64,000 bases of DNA, from the sequence record OZ196593.1, one strand, 5' to 3'. Below, one piece after another: positions 788-57,441 of this stretch (the stretch's first letter is position 1; every line of letters begins with the position of its first letter). Below the pieces are notes generated by a model. That model was not told the origin of the DNA and made no database searches. It worked only from the letters and a program-made list of their open reading frames with translations. A program made the position numbers and the translations under genes.

Positions 788-2754
788 TGCACACTCTCAA
801 CCCTGACTTTATTAAACGTGCGATTCAACAAGGCGAAGTGTTCAAACGCGTCGCTGAGATAATCGGTCAAGCGCGTCACGATCACTCGCAACTGCAAAAC
901 TGTGTGATACTTGATACACGCGTTGTCGTTGTGCTGTTCGTTGCAGGTCATACTAAACGTGAGTTCGTTACGTACGAAGAGATCAGCGACTACATTCACG
1001 AACACGATGTTCAATTCACATAGGCAATATCATGAACGTATCTCAATTACTTGACCAAGCAAGACAACTACAACTCATTGTTAAACGCATCGCGCTTGAT
1101 CGTCACGATGATGATATGCTCGTTGTCTCTACGTGTTGGACTGGCATCTACTACAAAGTAATGATGTGCAAGAAAGGTCGTGGCGCTAAACCATTTACTG
1201 AAATCATTCGCACGAGTGAACTCGAAGAACGTTTAGCTGAAATTAAACGCATCAAAGATGAACCACTATGACATTTGATCCTAAAATGAAATCAGCACGC
1301 ATCATGCAAGAGTATGAACAACTCAAAGATGCTGTGACTCAATGCATTGACTTGCGTGATGATGAGTCTGTAACTCACGTTGAATACTGTAGACAAAGCA
1401 ATGTGTTCACTGCTGTTGTCGCTACTGATATGTGGCTCGACAATATACAAGTCGATGGCATTACTGTTGAAACTAAATTGAGAGAAATCGATGAACGCAC
1501 ACGAAACAGTTAAACATTACCAACGCATCAAGCGAACAATCGTTACCATCATCGATGAGAACTTCAAAGGCAACTTCACTATCATGGATGCTTTCTATGA
1601 TGATGAACACAAGCATTGGGAAGTTAGCGTCTACGATAATGGCAAAACAGTTGAATACTTCATTACTTCTCATGAACTCGACTGCCGATTCGAATTCGAA
1701 GACATGAAACTGTCTGTTCCATTACCTGATGTGCTGTGCATGAACGACGACGTGCTCGATGAACTGAAGAAAAAACTATGGACGTAAAAGAAACTGTTCA
1801 ACGACACGCGTTCATCTTTAAGAAACTCGATGAACTGCTTGAACTAAACTCGTGTCAATACACTGACCTTGTAGTATGGGATGATGAACGCGAACTGTTC
1901 GAAGTGTGCATCGTCACTGAATCAGAGAATGGCACTGAATATGATGACGTTGAAGTAACGCTCATCACAATACAAAACTATATCGATAAGGAACTATCAT
2001 GAATAGCATGAGACTAGCACTACCAACTTACCTGCAACATCTAACTGTTGTTGAGAACTCTATCACTGTTGATTCTGCACGCGATAAAGCATTGCTTGTT
2101 GAATGGCTGAAGTCAGCGAAAGCTAAGTTCACTATTGAACAAACAACTATCTCTCGCGCTGTGTATCACGTTAAACGTATCGAGGTATAGCATGAGCCAT
2201 ACGATGAAAGCAATGCTGCACACGCTTGAACAAACTGAAATGGCTATTGCACAAGAGTTTGATCTCGATGAACTGTGGCACGGACTGATTGACTGCACTA
2301 ACGATAACTTTGTGTTCTCTATCTGTACCGATGACGTGAAAGATGTCGAACAAGTGCTTGAACAAATACGTGAAGTGAACTACCAGTTCGATACCATTGA
2401 TGACCTCAATGATGGCGATTGCTATGCCATTGAAGTATACGGCACTAGCGTATGGTTGAGCAAAGACAAACAGTATTGCTTAATCGTTGGCTCTCAAAAC
2501 AATCTCGACATGAACTTCTATCTGTTTGATATGAAGAACAATCGCAACAACGAATGGACTGACGAGTAATGCCGTACGCAATCATCTTGACTAATACTAA
2601 TGGCGAAACATGCGAAATCAAACCATTGGTTAACAACTCACTCAAATCTGAATATGGTCTTGAGTGCCGTAAGATTCAACAAAACGCTGCTCTACTCGCT
2701 AAACGAATAGAGAAATTCGACGACGTTGAATCATGTGTCGTTAAACACTATTAA
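787..2754 (+). other. Array of small hypothetical early CDS: 787-1023, 1032-1271, 1268-1513, 1491-1787, 1778-2002, 1999-2190, 2192-2569, 2569-2754
   Basis: Abutting or overlapping (ATGA-type) co-directional ORFs; no recognisable domains. Confidence 0.75.
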
Positions 2755-2779
2755 CTGAAGCGCAATCACAATAAAGTGG

Positions 2780-2808
2780 TTGCGCTTTTTTTTTGCAATC
2801 AGTATAAT
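2780..2808 (+). promoter_or_regulatory. sigma70-type early promoter
   Basis: TTGCGC-17 bp-TATAAT; leader ends GGAGAACATTATG (ATG 2846); TCACA half-site ends 9 bp upstream of the -35. Confidence 0.8.
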
Positions 2809-2845
2809 GAACACAAGAAACAAAAGAATCAAATCGGAGAACATT

Positions 2846-3886
2846 ATGACACTCATTATCTCATTCGTACTCGCTGTCATTACTATCATGACATTCGTTA
2901 GTGCTATTAAACGCTTCAGCTTCTTGCTGCTACTCCTAAGCGCAATCACTGGACTATGCTCGTACATAATGCTGTACGCTTCATTCATGTAAGGAACAAA
3001 CATGGCTATTCTAATCGCAGTGCTAATGGCTTTCTTTGCCATGATGCTGTTCATCAATCTCGTTACTGATTTCTTAACGCTATCAGATACACGATTCTTT
3101 GTAATAGCTCTAGCTATCGCAACTATCGTTAATGCCGCTCACCATATCATTACACATCTATACGGAGTACCACTATGATTGTACAATTGCAGAAACTCAT
3201 TGAAGAAAACAACAAGCACGAGAACTCTATCAATGGCAATATGCTGTTCGCTGAAGTAAACGCGATTCAAGCTCGTATCACTCTCAATAAAGTAGAGATA
3301 GAAGAACTGAGCAAGCAACTCTTTAAACAATTCGTGCAAGTCATTAAAAGAAACAAACACGAAGGCAAATACGATAGAGCTGCTAATCGTTACACTCAGT
3401 TCTGGAGCTTCATTGAACTAGACAATAAGTTTCTTACTGTTAATCTACGCTATGATGGCTATGATGAACCAGATACGTATGAAGATGTAAAGATACCATT
3501 ACTTGCATTAACCAACGAAGAGCAATTCGCTAAACAACAAATCATTACTCTTGCTCAACAACGTGTAGAATGGAGCATTAGCCATCTAGCTAGACTAGAG
3601 AAAGAAATCGTGACTGCGCGTGAACGTCTTGCTAAAGATAACGCTGAACTACAACAACTGGTGAACTCAAATGATTAAAGCTATCTGTAATGACATTACT
3701 TCTCCTCGTGTAGACGATAACACTAAATTACCAACTGGCATTACCGTCGGCTCTTGCTACTCAGTACACATGTACAACGATAACGCAGATAACAACAAAC
3801 GTCCTCCTATGATTCGTATCACGAACGACTTAGGACAACGCGCTTCGTATGCTGCTGAACGCTTTACACTGCTGCTGAACGAATAA
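2846..3886 (+). other. Small CDS: two membrane peptides (2846-2992, 3002-3178), coiled-coil protein (3175-3678), hypothetical (3671-3886)
   Basis: Hydrophobic two-helix ORFs followed by coupled ORFs. Confidence 0.7.
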
Positions 3887-4471
3887 ACAACGCAACTGTA
3901 CTCTAACAACACGCTCGTTCAATACAGAAGCTCTCAGAAGCTCTCAGAGCGTGTTACAGACGATATCAGATGTAATGCTTTTTCATATGACGCACCATGC
4001 CTCGTTATTATCAGCAAATGGTATGACGTGAGAGAATATCACTATGATGTGGGTATGAACGTGTGTCATAAGTGTTTGAATAATATCGCGTCGTACAGAA
4101 ATATGCAGTATAATGAGCTGCGAATTGTGTGTTGGTTAGATGATTGAGATAGAGTGACGAAAATTGGTGAAGTCTCACGCGGACACGTGTAGTCGAGAAC
4201 AGCCAAGAATGGTACACAATTTCGAAAAGGCTAAGCCATCCGCAGATGATTGACAGAAAAGATTTGACACGCTGCGGTTGGTTGTGTTAGCGTAGTCCAG
4301 TCCAATAACATAGAGAGAATGACAGATGATTACATTAAGTGTGTTTTACATAGCGCGAGACATGCCATATGGTGAGCGTCCCGAAGAGTTATATTGGGGT
4401 ACGGTGTTGATAGACGTATTGATGTTTCCAACCGCGTACTTTTTACTTGAATTATTGATGAGAACATAGAA
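3887..4471. other. 585-bp gene-free region with repeats and a GC-skew switch; candidate replication origin or control region
   Basis: No credible ORF; inverted repeat AACACGCTC (3908-3916)/GAGCGTGTT (3947-3955) encloses CAGAAGCTCT x2; top strand is C>G before about 4000 and G>C after. Confidence 0.4.
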
Positions 4472-40194: not shown

Positions 40195-41351
40195 AATGTA
40201 CATTACCATTTGATGGTTTTTTCGTAAACGCGATGGGAAAATTTTCCCCGTGCTGTGCGTTGTCTGTAATGAACGAAGACAGCAACGAGGAATCATCTAT
40301 CACGATTGACATGGATGGTGATTTCATAAATCACGAACGCATGGTCGAGCTACGCAAAGAACATGCAAGTTGTGATATCAAAAATCAGACATGCATCGAC
40401 TGCATCGCGAGATATAAAGGTAGTGACACGTTTAATAGTGATTTGGTGAGTGGTGAATTGCCTGACACATATGACGCAGACACGGGTCGAATATCAACGC
40501 CAGATTTCAAACATTTGAATGTCGCGTTTAGCAATCGCTGCAACTTAGCATGCCGTATGTGTTCTTCGATGAACTCTAATAAGTTTGGCGAAATGATGCA
40601 CAACAAGATTCGATTACAAGACATTATCTACTTGTCTGATCAGTGGTATAACGAAGAAAATCCAGGTAAAGTAAACAACGCATTTGATGATGATAGTCTC
40701 GGGTACTTAATAGAACATAGCCAGAACACTGACACCATAACTATTCATGGCGGTGAACCCTTTCTCGAACCGAGAGTCGTGCAGTTCCTTGATTCTGTGA
40801 AGAAAACGAAGAAGTTATACATCACAACTAACGGAACTCGTAAACCAAGGCAAACTATAATCGACGCGATTAATAATAACAACTCAGGTATAATGTTCAG
40901 CATCGAGGGTACGAAAGATGTACAGGAATATGTTCGAATCGGATCGAAGATGAGCGACATTTGGGATAATATAGCTTACATACGAGAGAAGTGCCCGAGT
41001 GCTGAGTTTTACACGAATACGGTTGTCACTGCGTACAACTGGCTAGATCTGGCTGATTTCATTCGTTTAGCACCTGAGTTTTCGAAGTTCGGGGTGGTAA
41101 ATATGTTCCTTGATTGGAACGCCACATATAGCCACATTGATTTCTTTCATGTTCTGAGCGAAGAAGATTTCAATGAGGGTAAGTCTAGACTTACTAGAGT
41201 CATGTATGATATACATCACATGGATATCCCAGAACGTCTAAAGCAGTCATGTAGAAAGTCAGTTCAGCAATTCGTTCATGCTAAATATCAACCAAATGAA
41301 CGTCTAAAAGGTCACTTTAATGAGTACAATAAACAAGTCGATGATTTGTAA
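40191..41351 (+). CDS. Radical SAM protein 2 (same architecture)
   Basis: CTLPF..SPCC..CIDC; CNLACRMC; HGGEPF; TTNGT; FSIEG. Confidence 0.92.
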   Translation: MKCTLPFDGFFVNAMGKFSPCCALSVMNEDSNEESSITIDMDGDFINHERMVELRKEHASCDIKNQTCIDCIARYKGSDTFNSDLVSGELPDTYDADTGRISTPDFKHLNVAFSNRCNLACRMCSSMNSNKFGEMMHNKIRLQDIIYLSDQWYNEENPGKVNNAFDDDSLGYLIEHSQNTDTITIHGGEPFLEPRVVQFLDSVKKTKKLYITTNGTRKPRQTIIDAINNNNSGIMFSIEGTKDVQEYVRIGSKMSDIWDNIAYIREKCPSAEFYTNTVVTAYNWLDLADFIRLAPEFSKFGVVNMFLDWNATYSHIDFFHVLSEEDFNEGKSRLTRVMYDIHHMDIPERLKQSCRKSVQQFVHAKYQPNERLKGHFNEYNKQVDDL

Positions 41352-42450
41352 AGCACCGTTCACGTCTCAAGTAGTGTGGACTAGTGGCGAAGTTCAGATG
41401 TGTTGTAATGATCAGCCGAGTGAAAAGCAATACAGCTTAGAAGATGAATGGAACAGTGAGTCGCGCAAACAAGCACGACGTGAATGGTTGTCGGGTGAGA
41501 TTCCCGACCGTTGTAAGTCATGCGTGAAGCGTATGGAATCTGGTGATGCTACTCTCCCTGTTTGGTATGACAAGATCATCGAAACAGTTGAGCTAACCGA
41601 AGAAGTATCAATGCCTGTTTATCTGCATATGAGTCCGTCGAATCAGTGCAATCTCGCGTGTCGCATGTGCAACGGTGAGATATCAAGCACGTATGACAAA
41701 CTGATATGTGATTCATCGAATGGCGAACGACACAATGACATCGTTGAATATGTGAAGAAATGCTTGCCAAAGCTTGAGCACTATGTTTTTCACGGCGGTG
41801 ACCCGATGTTCTACAAAGACTTTCTTCGCGTTGTCGAAGTGCTGAAAGGGCGTAAAGATGATTTGTACATCAACGTAATCACGAACGGCACGCATCACAA
41901 GTCAGATGGCGTTGATATGATACCGCATTTGAAAGAGTTCAAGAACTTGAAAGTGACGTTTTCGATTGACAGCATCGGCAAGTACAACGACTACATGCGT
42001 ACTCTGACCAAGACGAGTCGCGTTGTTGACAACTTCAATAAATGGTGTCGCGAAGTTCCTCATGCAGAAATGTCTATACACACCATAACGACGAACATTT
42101 CTTCGCTCGGTATCGTTGAGCACTTGCGCAATATATACAACAGCGATATGTTTGACCGAGTTGATGCGTTCAGTCATTTCATGGTTGACTGGCCAGTTGA
42201 ATATCGCGTACACAATCAACCACCTGCGATGCGTCAGCGCGTGCTAGATAGCATCAATGAATTTCGCGATGAAGTCGAATCGTATATCGGTGCAGATATT
42301 GAAACTGCTAAGAACATTCTGATTAATATTGAGCGACAATTCGAACGACCATTTGACATTAAAGAATGGGCAATGTTCTTGAAGAAGAACAAAGAACACG
42401 ATGTACTGAGTAAATCAGACACGAGTATAATTGAAATTATGAAGGTCTAA
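41320..42450 (+). CDS. Radical SAM protein 3 (start may be 41341)
   Basis: CKAPF..QMCC..CKSC; CNLACRMC; HGGDPM; ITNGT; FSIDS. Confidence 0.92.
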   Translation: MSTINKSMICKAPFTSQVVWTSGEVQMCCNDQPSEKQYSLEDEWNSESRKQARREWLSGEIPDRCKSCVKRMESGDATLPVWYDKIIETVELTEEVSMPVYLHMSPSNQCNLACRMCNGEISSTYDKLICDSSNGERHNDIVEYVKKCLPKLEHYVFHGGDPMFYKDFLRVVEVLKGRKDDLYINVITNGTHHKSDGVDMIPHLKEFKNLKVTFSIDSIGKYNDYMRTLTKTSRVVDNFNKWCREVPHAEMSIHTITTNISSLGIVEHLRNIYNSDMFDRVDAFSHFMVDWPVEYRVHNQPPAMRQRVLDSINEFRDEVESYIGADIETAKNILINIERQFERPFDIKEWAMFLKKNKEHDVLSKSDTSIIEIMKV

Positions 42451-46835: not shown

Positions 46836-47509
46836 GTTTTAATCCTATTTTTGAACACAAGTGACATGTAAGAGTATGAACCCGAAATGCCGCCTGTCTG
46901 ACTGCCATAACTATTTGATACTGTGCCTAACGACGCGCCACTTTTGTAACCTGCTAGAGACGTGCTTGTTGTATTGAACACAGCGTAACCAGAGTTTGCG
47001 TGATAAATGTAGTAGTACACTCTATATAGTGTCGCAGTACCGTACCATGCACCCCATGATGGGTAACGACCACTATCCATTAGACCTTTAACAGCAGCTA
47101 AGTTTGTGCTTCCGTCTTTCACGTAAGCCCACGTGTTGTAGCCGCCACTCGCCCCTGATACTGTAATTGAACGACTTGTGTTGTTATTGATCCATGAACC
47201 AACTGGTGCATAGTAGAACGTACCGTCGATGTTATCGTAACGTTTCGTCGTGAACTGAAAACGTACTTGAATCGCGTCCATCCAAAGACCGTGATTGTCG
47301 CTCGTAGCTGAACCGGCTAGGTTGTACATTGACACTGCGCCATTGTCTGGCATTAGTGTATCGCCGTTCGTACCCCAGTATGTGTAACGCGGCAATTGAT
47401 TGGCAGTTGAAACCGACTGAGTTGACGTGTGTACTTGACGGTAGTTGCTCAATGCAGTTCCGTAGTTCTTACACCAAGCGTCACGAATCGCTGTAATTGA
47501 AACACTCAT
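46832..47509 (-). CDS. Late Gly/Ser/Thr/Tyr-rich protein; putative tail-fibre adhesin or virion appendage
   Basis: Composition; P..GAVSMYNLAGS resembles the N-terminal attachment motif of gp38-like adhesins; perfect late promoter upstream. Confidence 0.55.
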   Translation of the reverse strand: MSVSITAIRDAWCKNYGTALSNYRQVHTSTQSVSTANQLPRYTYWGTNGDTLMPDNGAVSMYNLAGSATSDNHGLWMDAIQVRFQFTTKRYDNIDGTFYYAPVGSWINNNTSRSITVSGASGGYNTWAYVKDGSTNLAAVKGLMDSGRYPSWGAWYGTATLYRVYYYIYHANSGYAVFNTTSTSLAGYKSGASLGTVSNSYGSQTGGISGSYSYMSLVFKNRIKT

Positions 47510-53294: not shown

Positions 53295-53564
53295 ATGAAA
53301 AATCAGCTTATATTGACAATTCAGAATGCTTGGTGTCGCCGTCGTGCATATCGTGTGCTCTTTGAAAAGCCGCGCTTCGGTGAGAAACGCAAATCGCAGT
53401 GGGAAGAAGATTGCAAAGAATTTTGGTATGTCTTAGGTCGATTGAACTCCGAGTTCATTGACAATTGCCCTGAAGACTGCAACGTTGTTCTAACGTGTGC
53501 ACCGTTACCACGCAACACCACTCAAATGTATTATGTTCAATATCAGAAAAAGGCGAACAAATAA
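53295..53564 (+). CDS. Hypothetical protein
   Basis: ATG after GAGAGAAAATT leader. Confidence 0.7.
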   Translation: MKNQLILTIQNAWCRRRAYRVLFEKPRFGEKRKSQWEEDCKEFWYVLGRLNSEFIDNCPEDCNVVLTCAPLPRNTTQMYYVQYQKKANK

Positions 53565-54283
53565 TGAAAAAACTATTTACAGCAGCAGCACTAATCGGTT
53601 CACTATTCCTAGTTGGTTGCAACGAAACGACTGAAAACACCGACAACGATCTTTTACTGAATGCATTACCTGCAATGTCGAAAACTGAAAAAGCTATGCT
53701 TGATCATTTGACTCAATCAGCATACTTGAGCTATCACAACGATACGTATGCCGAGATTATTCGAACTCGTATCACATTCGGTCGCGACGTTACAGCACGT
53801 CCCGATGAACTTGTACCGTTCTGTGATGTAATTGGTACTGTGAACGCTGACGAGAAATCTCGCGATGTTGTGGGTCGTCACTTTACTCTGAATTCTCAGT
53901 GGTTCGAGAAATACGGTATCACTCTGACTACACAGTGTAATCAAATTCAATACGACAAAGAACAGATTGAACAAGCGCGTCAACGCATGATCGAACAAGC
54001 AAAAGCTGACGAACTTGAAGTATCAAACTCAGTTGTTTCGAAAGAAGCAGTACGAGTTGAGAAGATTCTAGAAGACACAGTGATCATCAAAGATGAAGCT
54101 GTACTGTCACCTGAATTGGTACGTGAGCTGCGTCAATCAGTTACTGACTGTAATCGCGCTAAAATCAAACTAATCGGTATCGTTGATTCTGGTGAGACTT
54201 TGACAACTACACACTACGATGACGTGCAAAGTCTTGTGCTTCAGTGTGAAATGCATCAACTTGAAGTTGAATTGAATAAATAA
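53564..54283 (+). CDS. Lipoprotein, paralogue of 34979-35671
   Basis: Lipobox FLVGC; shared Cys-containing motifs and identical LEVELNK end. Confidence 0.85.
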   Translation: MKKLFTAAALIGSLFLVGCNETTENTDNDLLLNALPAMSKTEKAMLDHLTQSAYLSYHNDTYAEIIRTRITFGRDVTARPDELVPFCDVIGTVNADEKSRDVVGRHFTLNSQWFEKYGITLTTQCNQIQYDKEQIEQARQRMIEQAKADELEVSNSVVSKEAVRVEKILEDTVIIKDEAVLSPELVRELRQSVTDCNRAKIKLIGIVDSGETLTTTHYDDVQSLVLQCEMHQLEVELNK

Positions 54284-54284
54284 T

Positions 54285-54307
54285 AAAAGCCCTCCGGGGC
54301 TTTTTTT
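54285..54307 (+). terminator. Intrinsic terminator
   Basis: AAAAGCCC-TCCG-GGGCTTTTTTT. Confidence 0.9.
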
Positions 54308-54331
54308 AGGTCTGAGGTAAATCGCAGACAC

Positions 54332-54358
54332 AAAAAAGGGAGCAATTAGCTCCCTTTT
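54332..54358 (-). terminator. Intrinsic terminator of the minus-strand module
   Basis: AAAAAAGGGAGC-AATTA-GCTCCCTTTT. Confidence 0.85.
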
Positions 54359-54359
54359 G

Positions 54360-55415
54360 TTATTTTACCATTTTGATTTCTATCTTGTTGGTCATGTATG
54401 CCATTTTCTTTTCGAACTCGACATCATATTCTGGTCGATGTTCATACTCAACTGACAACATTTCTTTCAAGCAACGAAACAGCTCGTTCTTGTAGTACCC
54501 TTCTTTCATGCCTTGCATTTGCTTGTATTGCTTCTGCATAGCTTCTTTGATGATATCGGGGTGCATGAACTTGATTGACATTTCACGCGGTGCTTTCACA
54601 GTACCGAAGTCAACGTACACTTGAGCCTTTTCTGCGACTTGAATGAAGTCGTAGATTGTGTCGTAGCTCATACGCGATAGCGTGTGGTGCATACACAAGT
54701 GTTTGCTGTGTGCTTTAAGAATCGGCACGTTAGCAAGCATCAAGTCGTGATCGATATTCTGGCGAATGTATTCGTTACGCTCTTTACCGCCATCACATGA
54801 GATTGTGAACACGATGCGACTGCGGTACAGTTTACATAGTGCTAGAATCTTCTTAGCTAATGGTGTGTGCAGAACAGTTCCGTTTGTCAGAATGAACACT
54901 TCAGCTTTAGTGTCTTCAAGCACTTCTTTCAGCACTTCAAGAGTACGCTTGTCCATGAACGGTTCACCACCATACAGAACAACAGTTTCAACGCCTTTCG
55001 GGATGCTGAAGTCAAGCTGCTTGTAATCGTATTCATCTTCGATATCGTACAAGTCCATGTACGTCTTGCTGTTCTTGCCGTAGCACATACGACATGCAAG
55101 GTTACATTTGTTTGACATCAAGATTTGAATCGTACGCGGGTGCTCTTCTAACGCCTCATATTCGAAGTATTTCTGATCAGAAAGTTCACCGTAGCTCATA
55201 CACTCTTTGCAGTATTCTGGTAGAGTGTCGTAGTCGAACATGCGTTCGCGCACTTCATTGATGATATCAGAGTGCCACCAGTCTTCAACGTTCTTGAATG
55301 GCTCACTTAGCTGAGAACAGCAAATGTGATAACCGTCTGGCTTTGCGTCGCGTGTGTTGAATGGAGAGCCGCACAGCGGCTTTCTCCCGTCTTTAAATCC
55401 GAACTTATCTAACAT
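54360..55415 (-). CDS. Radical SAM protein 5 (same architecture)
   Basis: CGSPF..HICC..CKEC; CNLACRMC; YGGEPF; TNGT; ISCDG. Confidence 0.92.
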   Translation of the reverse strand: MLDKFGFKDGRKPLCGSPFNTRDAKPDGYHICCSQLSEPFKNVEDWWHSDIINEVRERMFDYDTLPEYCKECMSYGELSDQKYFEYEALEEHPRTIQILMSNKCNLACRMCYGKNSKTYMDLYDIEDEYDYKQLDFSIPKGVETVVLYGGEPFMDKRTLEVLKEVLEDTKAEVFILTNGTVLHTPLAKKILALCKLYRSRIVFTISCDGGKERNEYIRQNIDHDLMLANVPILKAHSKHLCMHHTLSRMSYDTIYDFIQVAEKAQVYVDFGTVKAPREMSIKFMHPDIIKEAMQKQYKQMQGMKEGYYKNELFRCLKEMLSVEYEHRPEYDVEFEKKMAYMTNKIEIKMVK

Positions 55416-55684
55416 TAGTTTAACTCATCTAGCAGTGATTGAAATTCTTCGTCGCGTTCAGCGTCTAATACGCCATTCATAAGTGCTTCGAGCGCGTCTA
55501 GAGATTGAATCTCTGGTGCTTTTGGTCGAAGATCTTCGAGAATATGAATCAACGATTCTTGTGGTAGGTCGTTATACACGATTTCGTCTGGTAATTCGTG
55601 TTTGTAAACACAGCCATCACCCCAATCGATTACGACTGCGTGTTCCCATTTGTCAATTTCTAGTATTTTAAAGTTCGGTTTCAT
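55415..55684 (-). CDS. Small acidic hypothetical protein
   Basis: 89 aa, overlapping both neighbours. Confidence 0.7.
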   Translation of the reverse strand: MKPNFKILEIDKWEHAVVIDWGDGCVYKHELPDEIVYNDLPQESLIHILEDLRPKAPEIQSLDALEALMNGVLDAERDEEFQSLLDELN

Positions 55685-56690
55685 GTTTTAATCCCCAGAG
55701 TGCTTCCCACTGCTCTCTTGACTGAGCGCGGTACATTTCAATATTCAATTTTTCATGTGGTTTTTTGATAACGTCTTTAACGATATTCGTCAAGTTACCT
55801 TTGTTTATATCGGCTTTTTCAACCGGAAAGATGAAGTCGCGTGTATACGGTGCATCATGTTGAACAATACACGGGATGTATTGACTCGCTTCTAATATCG
55901 CATACGGCATGATCTCGATGTGAGACATGTGCAGCAAGCATTTACTCTTCATCATCGCAGCGATTACTTTCTCGCGTGGCTGACATACGTGAACTTTGCA
56001 GTCTAATCCGGGTGGCGGAGTAGTCGTTCCCGTGCTGTATACATGCACTTTAAGCCCGCTCTTAGCTAACGAGCGAAGCATTTCGGGTATTTGCTTACGT
56101 TTGTATGCGCCAGACACAATAACCACGTCAGTCTCTTCAGCAGCGTCTAGCTCTTCTTGTGATATCTTCGGTAGTTCGAATGGTTCGAATGCTGTGACGT
56201 GTTTGCCACCCATTAGATATTCGCCCCAATACTTAATGCCGTCAGACTGAGCAATGTTCGTAACTAGACGTTCGATGCTCATCATTTGTTTCCACTGCTT
56301 GAGATTGTACATCATGTGAATGTCCATGTACTTCTTGTAGCTCTCAGGCACGATTAAGTCACCGAAGTGATGTTGATTATAGCATTTACGATTCGCTTCA
56401 ATACAAGCGCGTAGAGCTTCAAATGAGTGCGTATAGATGATAGTGTCTTCATCTAGTGAGCGCATCGCCATCGCGTTTGCTTTGTAGTCATCAAAAGCGC
56501 GATTGGTAAGAACATGTTCGCAACCGAAGTCCCAGTATTTTGCATGAGGACAATATTTGTCACCAAGTACAATCACTTTGACATCGCAATTATACGTCTT
56601 CATTAATCGGACGTGATCTTGAATGAATGTATAGATACCACCACCGATACCTAGCATAAAATCAGTGACCACATAACGAACTTTTTTCAT
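55668..56690 (-). CDS. GT-B fold glycosyltransferase (GT4-like), paralogue of 42452-43537
   Basis: GGGIYTF; HFGDL; YKRK; E-X7-E (IEIMPYAILEA). Confidence 0.75.
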   Translation of the reverse strand: MKKVRYVVTDFMLGIGGGIYTFIQDHVRLMKTYNCDVKVIVLGDKYCPHAKYWDFGCEHVLTNRAFDDYKANAMAMRSLDEDTIIYTHSFEALRACIEANRKCYNQHHFGDLIVPESYKKYMDIHMMYNLKQWKQMMSIERLVTNIAQSDGIKYWGEYLMGGKHVTAFEPFELPKISQEELDAAEETDVVIVSGAYKRKQIPEMLRSLAKSGLKVHVYSTGTTTPPPGLDCKVHVCQPREKVIAAMMKSKCLLHMSHIEIMPYAILEASQYIPCIVQHDAPYTRDFIFPVEKADINKGNLTNIVKDVIKKPHEKLNIEMYRAQSREQWEALWGLKHETEL

Positions 56691-56697
56691 AAATTTG

Positions 56698-56726
56698 TTG
56701 ACTCTCTGTTTGTTATTGTGTAAGCT
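56698..56726 (+). promoter_or_regulatory. sigma70-type promoter divergent from the GT-B module
   Basis: TTGACT-17-TAAGCT with TG extension. Confidence 0.65.
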
Positions 56727-56759
56727 CTATTTTAACGCAAGCAACATGGGAATTAAACA

Positions 56760-57441
56760 ATGCGAATTCTTTCGCAAGACCTTATTCGCTTACGTGTTGA
56801 AGAGTTACCGTTTGTTAGATTAGACGTTGACAAGCAGCGCAGAATATGCGAGTATTTAAACACGCTAGATGACGAAACAATCTACGCACTTGAAGAACAC
56901 ACCGAAGATGCCGACGGCACTCGTAAAATTTTGAAATTCTTATTGAAGAAAATTGGAGAAAAATGATATGGCTTACGAATCAGTATTTAACGGAACAAAT
57001 CGTTACAAAGTTCTACGCGAGGGTCGCGATTACATCAACAAAGTCGCACACAGACACGGCGCAGTTGATAAAGGTATTTACGTGACTATTGACTATCATG
57101 TAATTGACAGAATCATGGATCACGAATTCCCTGCTCGTGTATTCGAAGTCATCGTCGGTCGATTGATCAAAAATCACCAAGATGAGATCATGAAGCTTGC
57201 AAATATGCCAGACGACGAACGTCCGAAGCACATCAACGTGTACGGTAACAAGCCAGGCTCACCTTACATGGTTGGCGTGACAATCAACAAAGCAGCAACT
57301 GGTAAAGTTTACGTGAATCTGCGTACTTGTTACAAAGAACGCAACAGTAAATATCGTCAACGCATCATCGAAGCATACAAAATTCGTGTGAAGACATCTT
57401 CAGAGATTGAAGCTGAAAATGCAGTGATTGACGACTTCTAA
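56760..57441 (+). other. Hypothetical CDS 56760-56966 and 56953-57441
   Basis: Coupled ORFs. Confidence 0.7.

Follow-up and report, generated by a model that had tools for sequence, protein, structure and literature searches.

We analysed a three-gene module encoded on the minus strand at positions 54360-56690 of a 64,000-nucleotide stretch of sequence record OZ196593.1 (hereafter the window, in whose numbering all positions without a contig label are given). The module encodes a predicted GT-B glycosyltransferase (GT), an acidic protein of 89 amino acids (aa) and a radical SAM (rSAM) enzyme with a putative N-terminal twitch domain. DNA search with the region 54300-56760 revealed 100% identity to Vibrio phages K566/K567, 94-95% identity to 16 sister isolates and 77-80% identity to F86, VS1/VS2, KVP40, phi-pp2 and others, with all 37 matching records spanning at least 80% of the query. 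The window thus belongs to a T4-related jumbo vibriophage, a KVP40-like Schizotequatrovirus. Translation required no alternative genetic code, and none was applied. The features of the locus, and the main-cluster genes with which they are compared, are the following:

55668..56690, minus strand: predicted GT-B (GT4-like) glycosyltransferase of 340 aa (open reading frame, phrog_27514, structure model, Foldseek, motifs)
55415..55684, minus strand: 89-aa acidic protein (open reading frame, phrog_15094, conserved columns, ratio of nonsynonymous to synonymous substitution rates, dN/dS)
54360..55415, minus strand: predicted N-terminal-twitch (half-SPASM) rSAM enzyme of 351 aa (PF04055, NF033640, cysteine motifs)
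54334..54358, minus strand: intrinsic terminator closing the module operon (sequence, terminator scan)
56691..56759, minus strand: divergent intergenic region of 69 nt, probable operon promoter (sequence, five-phage alignment)
42452..43537, plus strand: GT-B paralogue of 361 aa in the main cluster, directly downstream of rSAM3, used as comparator
41320-42450: main-cluster rSAM3, immediately upstream of the 361-aa GT-B

An earlier, sequence-only reading of this DNA had described a minus-strand three-gene unit with its own terminator, about 7 kb from a larger cluster of related genes, and our analysis bears out both points. The open reading frames run from 56690 to 54360 with overlapping ends: the GT stop overlaps the start of the small gene by 17 nt, and the small gene and the rSAM gene share a joint stop/start TAATG, which is kept in K566, D482, KVP40 and nt-1, while in D479 the two codons are separated by one base. 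Directly after the rSAM stop lies the terminator (54358-54334), a GC-rich 10-bp stem with a loop of 5 and a T-run; a second hairpin (54304-54285) serves the convergent plus-strand gene. The main cluster (36.5-47.5 kb) ends at 47509, leaving a gap of 6.85 kb to the module.

Proteins encoded by the module

The module GT matched phrog_27514 (E=1e-182) and is the orthologue of KVP40.0274 and 6E351A_0339. Its AlphaFold model (predicted local distance difference test, pLDDT, 86.7; predicted template modelling score, pTM, 0.84) consists of two Rossmann halves with an inter-domain cleft. A Foldseek search with the model gave at least 500 matches at E<=1e-3, and all those listed were GT-B enzymes (best match BshA, E=1.3e-9), the top 50 being GT4, GT1 and epimerase enzymes. 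The sequence-only reading had pointed out motifs common to this protein and the 361-aa GT-B of the main cluster (GG/SGI.T(Y/F), H.GD, YKRK and IE..PY...EA), and these were recovered as invariant columns of a 10-sequence alignment (GGGIxT, HxGD, YKRK and IExxPYxxxEA). The last of them is the GT4 EX7E motif, located at E259..E267 of the module GT with both glutamates invariant, and aligns with the WaaB stretch FEGFPMTLLEA. The two GT-Bs of the window share 22-26% identity (BLASTP E=3e-15) and both match phrog_27514. With the GT4 enzymes BshA (3MBO), WaaB (5N7Z) and WbnH (4XYW) the module GT shares the two-Rossmann fold (template modelling score 0.58-0.65), the EX7E motif (as aligned with WaaB), an N-terminal glycine-rich loop and the basic YKRK in the donor half, whereas its identity to them is 13-16% and its score for Pfam Glycos_transf_1 (PF00534) stayed below the cut-off (13.6 vs 26.4 bits, E=0.048). 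Unlike theirs, its family is small (62 representatives) and phage-borne in every informative context examined. The protein is thus, by its predicted structure, a GT4-like glycosyltransferase of GT-B fold.

The module rSAM, the orthologue of KVP40.0272 with 86-99% identity across the genus, contains a Radical_SAM domain (PF04055, E=1e-12). Its best match was NF033640, twitch domain-containing radical SAM protein (E=2.7e-39), covering model positions 3-371 of 398 with 135.4 bits, below the curated cut-off of 170 bits; the four rSAMs of the main cluster matched the same family with 142-202 bits, of which rSAM1 (202) and rSAM3 (193) pass the cut-off. All five rSAMs of the window have a common cysteine pattern, C15, C32/C33, C69 and C72 followed by C104-x3-C108-x2-C111. 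The cysteines of the CX3CX2C motif (C104, C108, C111) occur without exception in the five paralogues and in every orthologue, and those of the N-terminal auxiliary cluster or half-SPASM (C15, C32, C33, C69, C72) are also invariant, providing four or five cluster cysteines; the paralogues match PF13186 SPASM at their N-termini. The module enzyme therefore resembles NF033640 in its N-terminal half-SPASM cysteine cluster, the CX3CX2C core that follows and the near full-length match, but differs by its score below the cut-off and its position in a long-stemmed clade of its own (see below). We found no function described for the NF033640 family in the literature. Further NCBIfam matches comprised viperin-like enzymes, MoaA, cytosylglucuronate decarboxylase and many peptide maturases; the similarity to viperin and MoaA (about 40 bits vs cut-offs of 180-284) is limited to the common rSAM core. 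Identity as a viperin (pVip) was rejected, as NF038283 scored 40.5 bits against a cut-off of 180 and over the rSAM core only, and we know of no viperin with an N-terminal twitch domain. The nearest ESM Atlas clusters to the module rSAM are 69-100% viral. Elsewhere, on a Chloroflexota contig of a metagenome-assembled genome (MAG; L005:599-11359, plus strand), at least 8 consecutive radical SAM genes, several with N-terminal SPASM/twitch motifs, were observed with no GT among them.

The 89-aa protein has an isoelectric point of 4.2 and 22 aspartate plus glutamate residues. Its sole family match was phrog_15094; there was no match in Pfam or NCBIfam and no neighbour in the ESM Atlas, and a profile of the protein found only module loci, with no counterpart in other GT/rSAM loci. 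It shows 42 invariant columns, the N-terminal and central blocks being invariant and the acidic C-terminal helix conserved, and since it is under purifying selection (dN/dS below) the open reading frame is a real gene. The poor structure model (pLDDT 63) predicts three strands followed by helices, for which Foldseek returned nothing at E<=1e-3 and VIA-align only unrelated chains (best Z 3.8). In three-chain predictions of rSAM, GT and the 89-aa protein, the last scored ipSAE values of 0.56, 0.64 and 0.52 (median 0.56; best control 0.03), which lend weak support to its docking on the rSAM, the custom alignments and the three-chain design being outside the calibration of the tool. Calibration had 58 of 80 solved complexes and 2 of 110 mismatched pairs reaching the mark; only 7 of the 80 solved complexes, but both of the passing mismatches, reached it with a score of 0.60 or less. 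The three runs share at least 27% of contacts, with a partner pLDDT of at least 65. When the GT was kept and the rSAM replaced, the score fell to 0.00; binding to the GT was thereby weakened as a candidate, a missing signal being no evidence against binding. Taken together, the TAATG coupling and the complex prediction make an accessory rSAM subunit the simplest reading: the 89-aa protein is a partner, probably of the rSAM, and may act as chaperone, adaptor or substrate, the roles suggested by the sequence-only reading.

Conservation and expression signals in KVP40-like phages

All 40 phage records with either protein contain the module, its gene order unchanged, among them nt-1, of the genus Mylasvirus, and D479, where identity falls to 59-69%, the neighbours differ and no nrdA lies beside it. 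Word-based homologue searches with all three proteins yielded only Schizotequatrovirus-type relatives. The dN/dS values vs KVP40, determined by the Nei-Gojobori method, were 0.10 for the GT, 0.06 for the 89-aa protein and 0.04 for the rSAM, and across comparisons ranged from about 0.04 to 0.20 (0.06-0.20 for the 89-aa protein). Similarly, the orthologues 6E351A_0337/_0338/_0339 were reported for each of 18 genomes, their dN/dS being 0.070, 0.098 and 0.137 (PMC12028318 Table S8), where they are listed as hypothetical or radical SAM only (PMC12028318). The comparison across related phages, which the sequence-only reading had proposed, therefore places the module among the core genes: in KVP40-like (Schizotequatrovirus, Mylasvirus) vibriophages it forms an ancient and fixed operon under purifying selection. 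In D479, the most divergent relative, an extra gene for a 158-aa protein (L047:5063-5539, plus strand) stands directly after the rSAM gene on the same strand.

The number of N-twitch rSAMs per record varies: K566 has five, KVP40 and D482 have three each, D479 has two and nt-1 has one, the module copy. Moreover, whole-record scans detected no GT8 or GT2 in the relatives of K566, namely KVP40, nt-1, D479 and D482. On these counts, the ancestral state is, in terms of gene content, one GT-B with one rSAM.

The 69-nt intergenic region is conserved in K566, D482, KVP40 and nt-1 and carries on the minus strand the elements TTGCTT (56744-56739), a -10-like TAAAAT (56734-56729; TAAAAT or TACAAT among phages) and a ribosome binding site (RBS). 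The T4-type late box TATAAATA was not found upstream of the module in the five-phage alignment, which weakens the case for a late promoter; the sole copy in the window (47562-47555, minus strand) precedes by 46 nt the start of the main-cluster operon on the minus strand. The presence of the -10-like hexamer together with the absence of TATAAATA, a consensus argument only, hints that the module is expressed early or middle rather than late. The same 69-nt gap (56691-56759) packs signals for both strands, as GGAGTCAAC is the RBS of the GT gene on the minus strand, and within its complement lies TTGACT, which would serve the plus-strand genes as a -35-like box.

Pairing with radical SAM genes and the origin of the two copies

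Using a profile of the GT family, we screened 1.84 billion representative proteins and obtained 62 members at E<=1e-3. Contigs were checked for 11 of these 62 representatives; P0023, L044, L049 and L051 were too short to inform, and the seven informative look-ups correspond to six distinct contexts (P0028 lies on two near-identical contigs), which with the two K566 loci make eight: the K566 module, the K566 main cluster, L040, L041, L042, L043, L045 and L050. In all eight, rSAM genes adjoin the GT-B gene or lie within a few genes of it, and in seven they are of the N-twitch type. Outside K566 the contexts are as follows:

L040: T4-like contig mirroring the K566 island; N-twitch rSAM followed by GT-B, convergent with another rSAM
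L041:2584-7888: tail fibre with S74 chaperone domain, 204-aa protein, GT-B, N-twitch rSAM (rSAM1 type)
L043:1304-8221: virion and fibre-like proteins, GT-B, N-twitch rSAM, four more rSAMs downstream
L045/L046: GT2 genes, YdjC, N-twitch rSAM, two GT-B genes
L050:1-7288: Laminin_G_3 giant protein, S74 domain protein, GT-B, then five rSAMs
L042: GT-B, UDP-glucose dehydrogenase, three GT2 genes, rSAMs of another type

Furthermore, L040 encodes (2013-4169, plus strand) a 718-aa protein in which a GT8 domain is fused to a full N-twitch rSAM (residues 323-706, NF033640 E=1e-41). On the unrelated contigs L041, L043 and L050 a tail-fibre or virion gene (Peptidase_S74, Laminin_G_3, tail-fibre PHROGs) is followed by a same-strand GT-B and then by one to five N-twitch rSAMs, and in the window itself each of the four GTs abuts an N-twitch rSAM (rSAM1-GT8a, rSAM3-GT-B, GT8b-rSAM4 and the module). 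The UDP-glucose dehydrogenase, YdjC and GT2 genes present in some clusters belong to glycan chemistry. The recurrent adjacency across unrelated phages and the natural GT8::rSAM fusion argue that the two enzymes act in one pathway, so that the proposal of GT-B plus rSAM as a functional unit, made from the window alone, is now well supported by gene context. We found no description of the pairing, the fusion, the module operon or the tail-fibre link in the literature.

A parallel is offered by the glycosylation of phage virions in mycobacteriophages, where GTs lie near structural genes as the pair follows tail-fibre genes in L041, L043 and L050; the K566 module differs in not being positioned beside structural genes and in that no virion glycan has been reported. 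To our knowledge, no radical SAM partner is associated with mycobacteriophage virion glycosylation. The phage-encoded GTs that glycosylate mycobacteriophage virions are those of Freeman et al. 2023, as cited in PMC12801897.

The history of the two copies in K566 proved to differ between the enzymes. The main cluster DNA matches K566/K567 only. In sister phages with flanks of 94-98% identity a different cassette occupies this site, containing QueC-like and NAPRT-like genes plus two N-twitch rSAMs, and the same is true of KVP40; K566/K567 were described to have swapped an “ancestral anti-defense island” for VPK566_0302-0314 (PMC12028318). The island lost from K566 (L001:10082-13745, KVP40.0258-0261; L003:3701-7971, D482) contains the QueC-like and NAPRT-like genes and two convergent N-twitch rSAMs, with no GT. 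In the GT tree, nine module orthologues and the pair formed by the K566 main-cluster GT and the L040 GT make up one clade (99/96 support) against all 25 other members; the GT thus does not show the greater similarity to unrelated lineages that would have spoken against the sequence-only reading. Since the nearest relative of the main-cluster GT, with 43% identity, resides in another phage, its origin fits arrival with the horizontally swapped island and not local duplication.

The rSAM tree separates several types. The rSAM3 type comprises genes from K566, L040, L043 and L050, each directly adjoining a GT-B; to the rSAM1 type belongs, among others, the rSAM gene downstream of GT-B in L041; and K566 rSAM4 with its L040 counterpart forms a third type. 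The rSAM domain of the L040 fusion clusters with KVP40_0261 and D482_0320. A clade of its own, on a stem of some 1.9-2.0 changes per site, is formed by the module rSAMs; its position shifts between analyses, the deep branches of this tree being long and poorly resolved. Forcing the module rSAM to join the rSAM3 type cost 1.26 log-likelihood units (approximately unbiased, AU, test p=0.35), which neither shows nor rejects such a grouping. A recent duplication of the rSAM was discarded, as the tree has no such signal. The sequence-only reading had taken GT-B plus rSAM for a duplicated, swappable unit. Duplication finds support for one half only: the two GT copies fall in one 99/96 clade, though with 22-26% identity and with arrival of the main-cluster copy by the island, and the module rSAM is a long branch of shifting position, so that duplication of the pair as a unit is possible but unproven. 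Swapping applies to the family and not to this module, which is fixed in all 40 relatives: GT-B pairs with the rSAM3, the rSAM1 or the module type, and the rSAM1 type occurs with both GT8 and GT-B. Judged from these pairings, the GT and rSAM subtypes clearly re-assort. The K566 main cluster is an expanded, horizontally acquired elaboration of this theme, and the module is the ancestral, conserved copy.

Proposed mechanism and competing explanations

We consider it somewhat probable that the module is a two-enzyme sugar-decorating unit with the 89-aa protein as an accessory. The GT4-like GT-B would take one sugar from a nucleotide-sugar of the host and attach it to an acceptor, and the N-twitch rSAM would edit the same sugar radically through hydrogen-atom abstraction, likely by epimerisation, oxidation or dehydration, acting either after transfer or earlier on the nucleotide-sugar donor. 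The 89-aa protein, kept at a fixed ratio by translational coupling, would dock on the rSAM as an accessory subunit. One GT and one rSAM should suffice for a single sugar, because nt-1 has the module rSAM only and KVP40, nt-1, D479 and D482 lack GT8 and GT2. The acceptor would be a macromolecule, likeliest a protein and possibly a phage fibre or other virion protein; within the general model, a phage protein is a possible but tentative choice. Fibre or virion proteins lead among the candidates because of the three tail-fibre/GT-B/rSAM loci and the fibre-like protein (Hep_Hag by EggNOG) that heads the K566 island. That the enzymes share one substrate is inferred, and so are the reaction order, the chemistry and the acceptor.

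Twitch-type rSAMs tailor the sugars of aminoglycosides: BtrN, HygY and NeoN, enzymes of bacterial secondary metabolism with a C-terminal twitch domain, act on already-built glycosides. They resemble the module enzyme in being rSAMs with one auxiliary cluster encoded beside GTs, which makes a logic of transfer followed by editing plausible; they differ by the C-terminal position of the twitch, which is N-terminal in the phage enzyme, and the likeness implies no specific sequence relationship.

Several observations weigh against this model. Both module enzymes score below the curated family cut-offs of Pfam and NCBIfam, and the docking of the 89-aa protein has the weak support given above. The two further N-twitch rSAMs of KVP40 and D482 lie beside QueC-like and NAPRT-like genes and not beside GTs, and therefore the N-twitch family may also work on nucleotide-like or cofactor-like substrates; likewise, the closest bacterial and MAG relatives of the rSAM stand in rSAM-only arrays with no GT homologues in those loci, so that a link to glycans does not hold throughout the family. 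No fibre gene adjoins the module itself. The module proteins were not among the 94 proteins identified by mass spectrometry (MS) of 6E351A particles, and no virion glycosylation was reported for these phages (PMC12028318). Decoration of virion proteins would, moreover, more naturally be late, so the lack of a late box upstream of the module speaks against a virion acceptor.

The alternative that survives best, though we regard it as unlikely, inverts the order of events: the rSAM would convert a nucleotide or nucleotide-sugar to an unusual donor which the GT then transfers, as a rare-sugar mini-pathway. Enzymes acting on nucleotides or nucleosides (viperin-like enzymes, MoaA, cytosylglucuronate decarboxylase) are among the characterised rSAM relatives beyond NF033640, the GT::rSAM fusion fits substrate channelling, and the KVP40/D482 island rSAMs have nucleotide and cofactor genes as neighbours. 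Against this, the likeness to viperin and MoaA is the limited one described above, about 40 bits vs 180-284 in the common core, and the aminoglycoside enzymes act on glycosides that are already built.

Less likely again is a host-directed or anti-defence role, in which the pair would modify a glycan of the host envelope, be it lipopolysaccharide (LPS) or a receptor, or else a small molecule of signalling or defence, at an early stage of infection, and so block superinfection or blunt defence. Upstream sigma-70-like and MotA-box-like elements without a late box would suit such timing, although this promoter reading is by consensus only. The surroundings agree with it as well: the region is described as rich in defence and anti-defence genes (PMC12028318), and the neighbouring K566 island carries PagP-like and LpxC-like genes. 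Among solved GTs, the LPS galactosyltransferase WaaB comes nearest in sequence, at a non-significant E=0.37. The island rSAMs, on the other hand, are weak against viperin, and the tail-fibre linkage in three other phages points elsewhere.

We regard as improbable that the system resembles the maturation of ribosomally synthesised and post-translationally modified peptides (RiPPs), with the 89-aa protein itself as the glycosylated and radically modified substrate or as a PqqD-like peptide chaperone. Like PqqD and the RiPP recognition element (RRE) chaperones, it is a protein of about 90 aa encoded directly upstream of an rSAM, with the stop/start overlap familiar from pqqD-pqqE, a predicted beta-then-alpha topology (three strands, then helices) and weakly predicted docking on the rSAM, and many peptide maturases are among the NCBIfam matches of the enzyme. 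Identity as a PqqD/RRE protein nevertheless gained no support, as the Pfam and NCBIfam searches and the fold searches with the poor model revealed no detectable sequence or fold similarity, and no precursor peptide gene is evident at the module. As to a substrate, the N- and C-terminal parts are both conserved, unlike a conserved leader with a variable core, there is only one conserved cysteine, and seven other loci pair GT and rSAM without any counterpart of the 89-aa protein. Glycosylation of DNA or tRNA bases, as by the T-even hydroxymethylcytosine (hmC) glucosyltransferases, is very improbable: T4-family phages are the classic case of GT-B action on DNA, and the present phages have dPreQ1-modified DNA and many tRNA genes (PMC12028318), but MS identified dPreQ1 as the dG modification with no sugar adduct (PMC12028318) and the T4 alpha- and beta-glucosyltransferases are not among the top 50 structural matches of the module GT.

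Returning to the sugar-decorating unit, its most specific form, which we put forward with low confidence, is a modular system of one GT and one N-twitch rSAM that would install radically edited rare sugars on the phages’ own receptor-binding or virion proteins, starting from common host nucleotide-sugars and re-assorting subtypes beside tail-fibre genes; the KVP40-type operon with its 89-aa subunit would be the minimal, one-sugar version. If true, glycans on viral proteins would be tailored by a system of a new class, and the NF033640 family would gain its first function. The parts belong to known superfamilies (GT-B/GT4-like and NF033640-type rSAM), and what appears new is the phage-core, three-protein unit of GT and radical sugar tailoring. 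The KVP40 module genes have been annotated as “hypothetical” or “radical SAM” since the first annotation, and we found no proposed function for them in the literature; the one-to-one pairing with a GT, once as a fusion, gives N-twitch rSAMs a concrete hypothesis, the radical editing of a transferred sugar. The core operon offers a minimal, tractable system in the cultivable phages KVP40, nt-1 and 6E35.1a. Were the acceptor a fibre or virion protein, this might bear on the host range and stability of broad-host-range vibriophages, which are of interest for aquaculture phage therapy.

The convergent neighbour of the module (53495-54283, plus strand) encodes a protein of 262 aa that carries a lipoprotein signal and a lipobox (LFLVGC). 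In purified virions, its orthologue VP6E351A_0334 was found with 16 and 30 counts (PMC12028318 Table S4), and such a particle-associated lipoprotein is unexpected.

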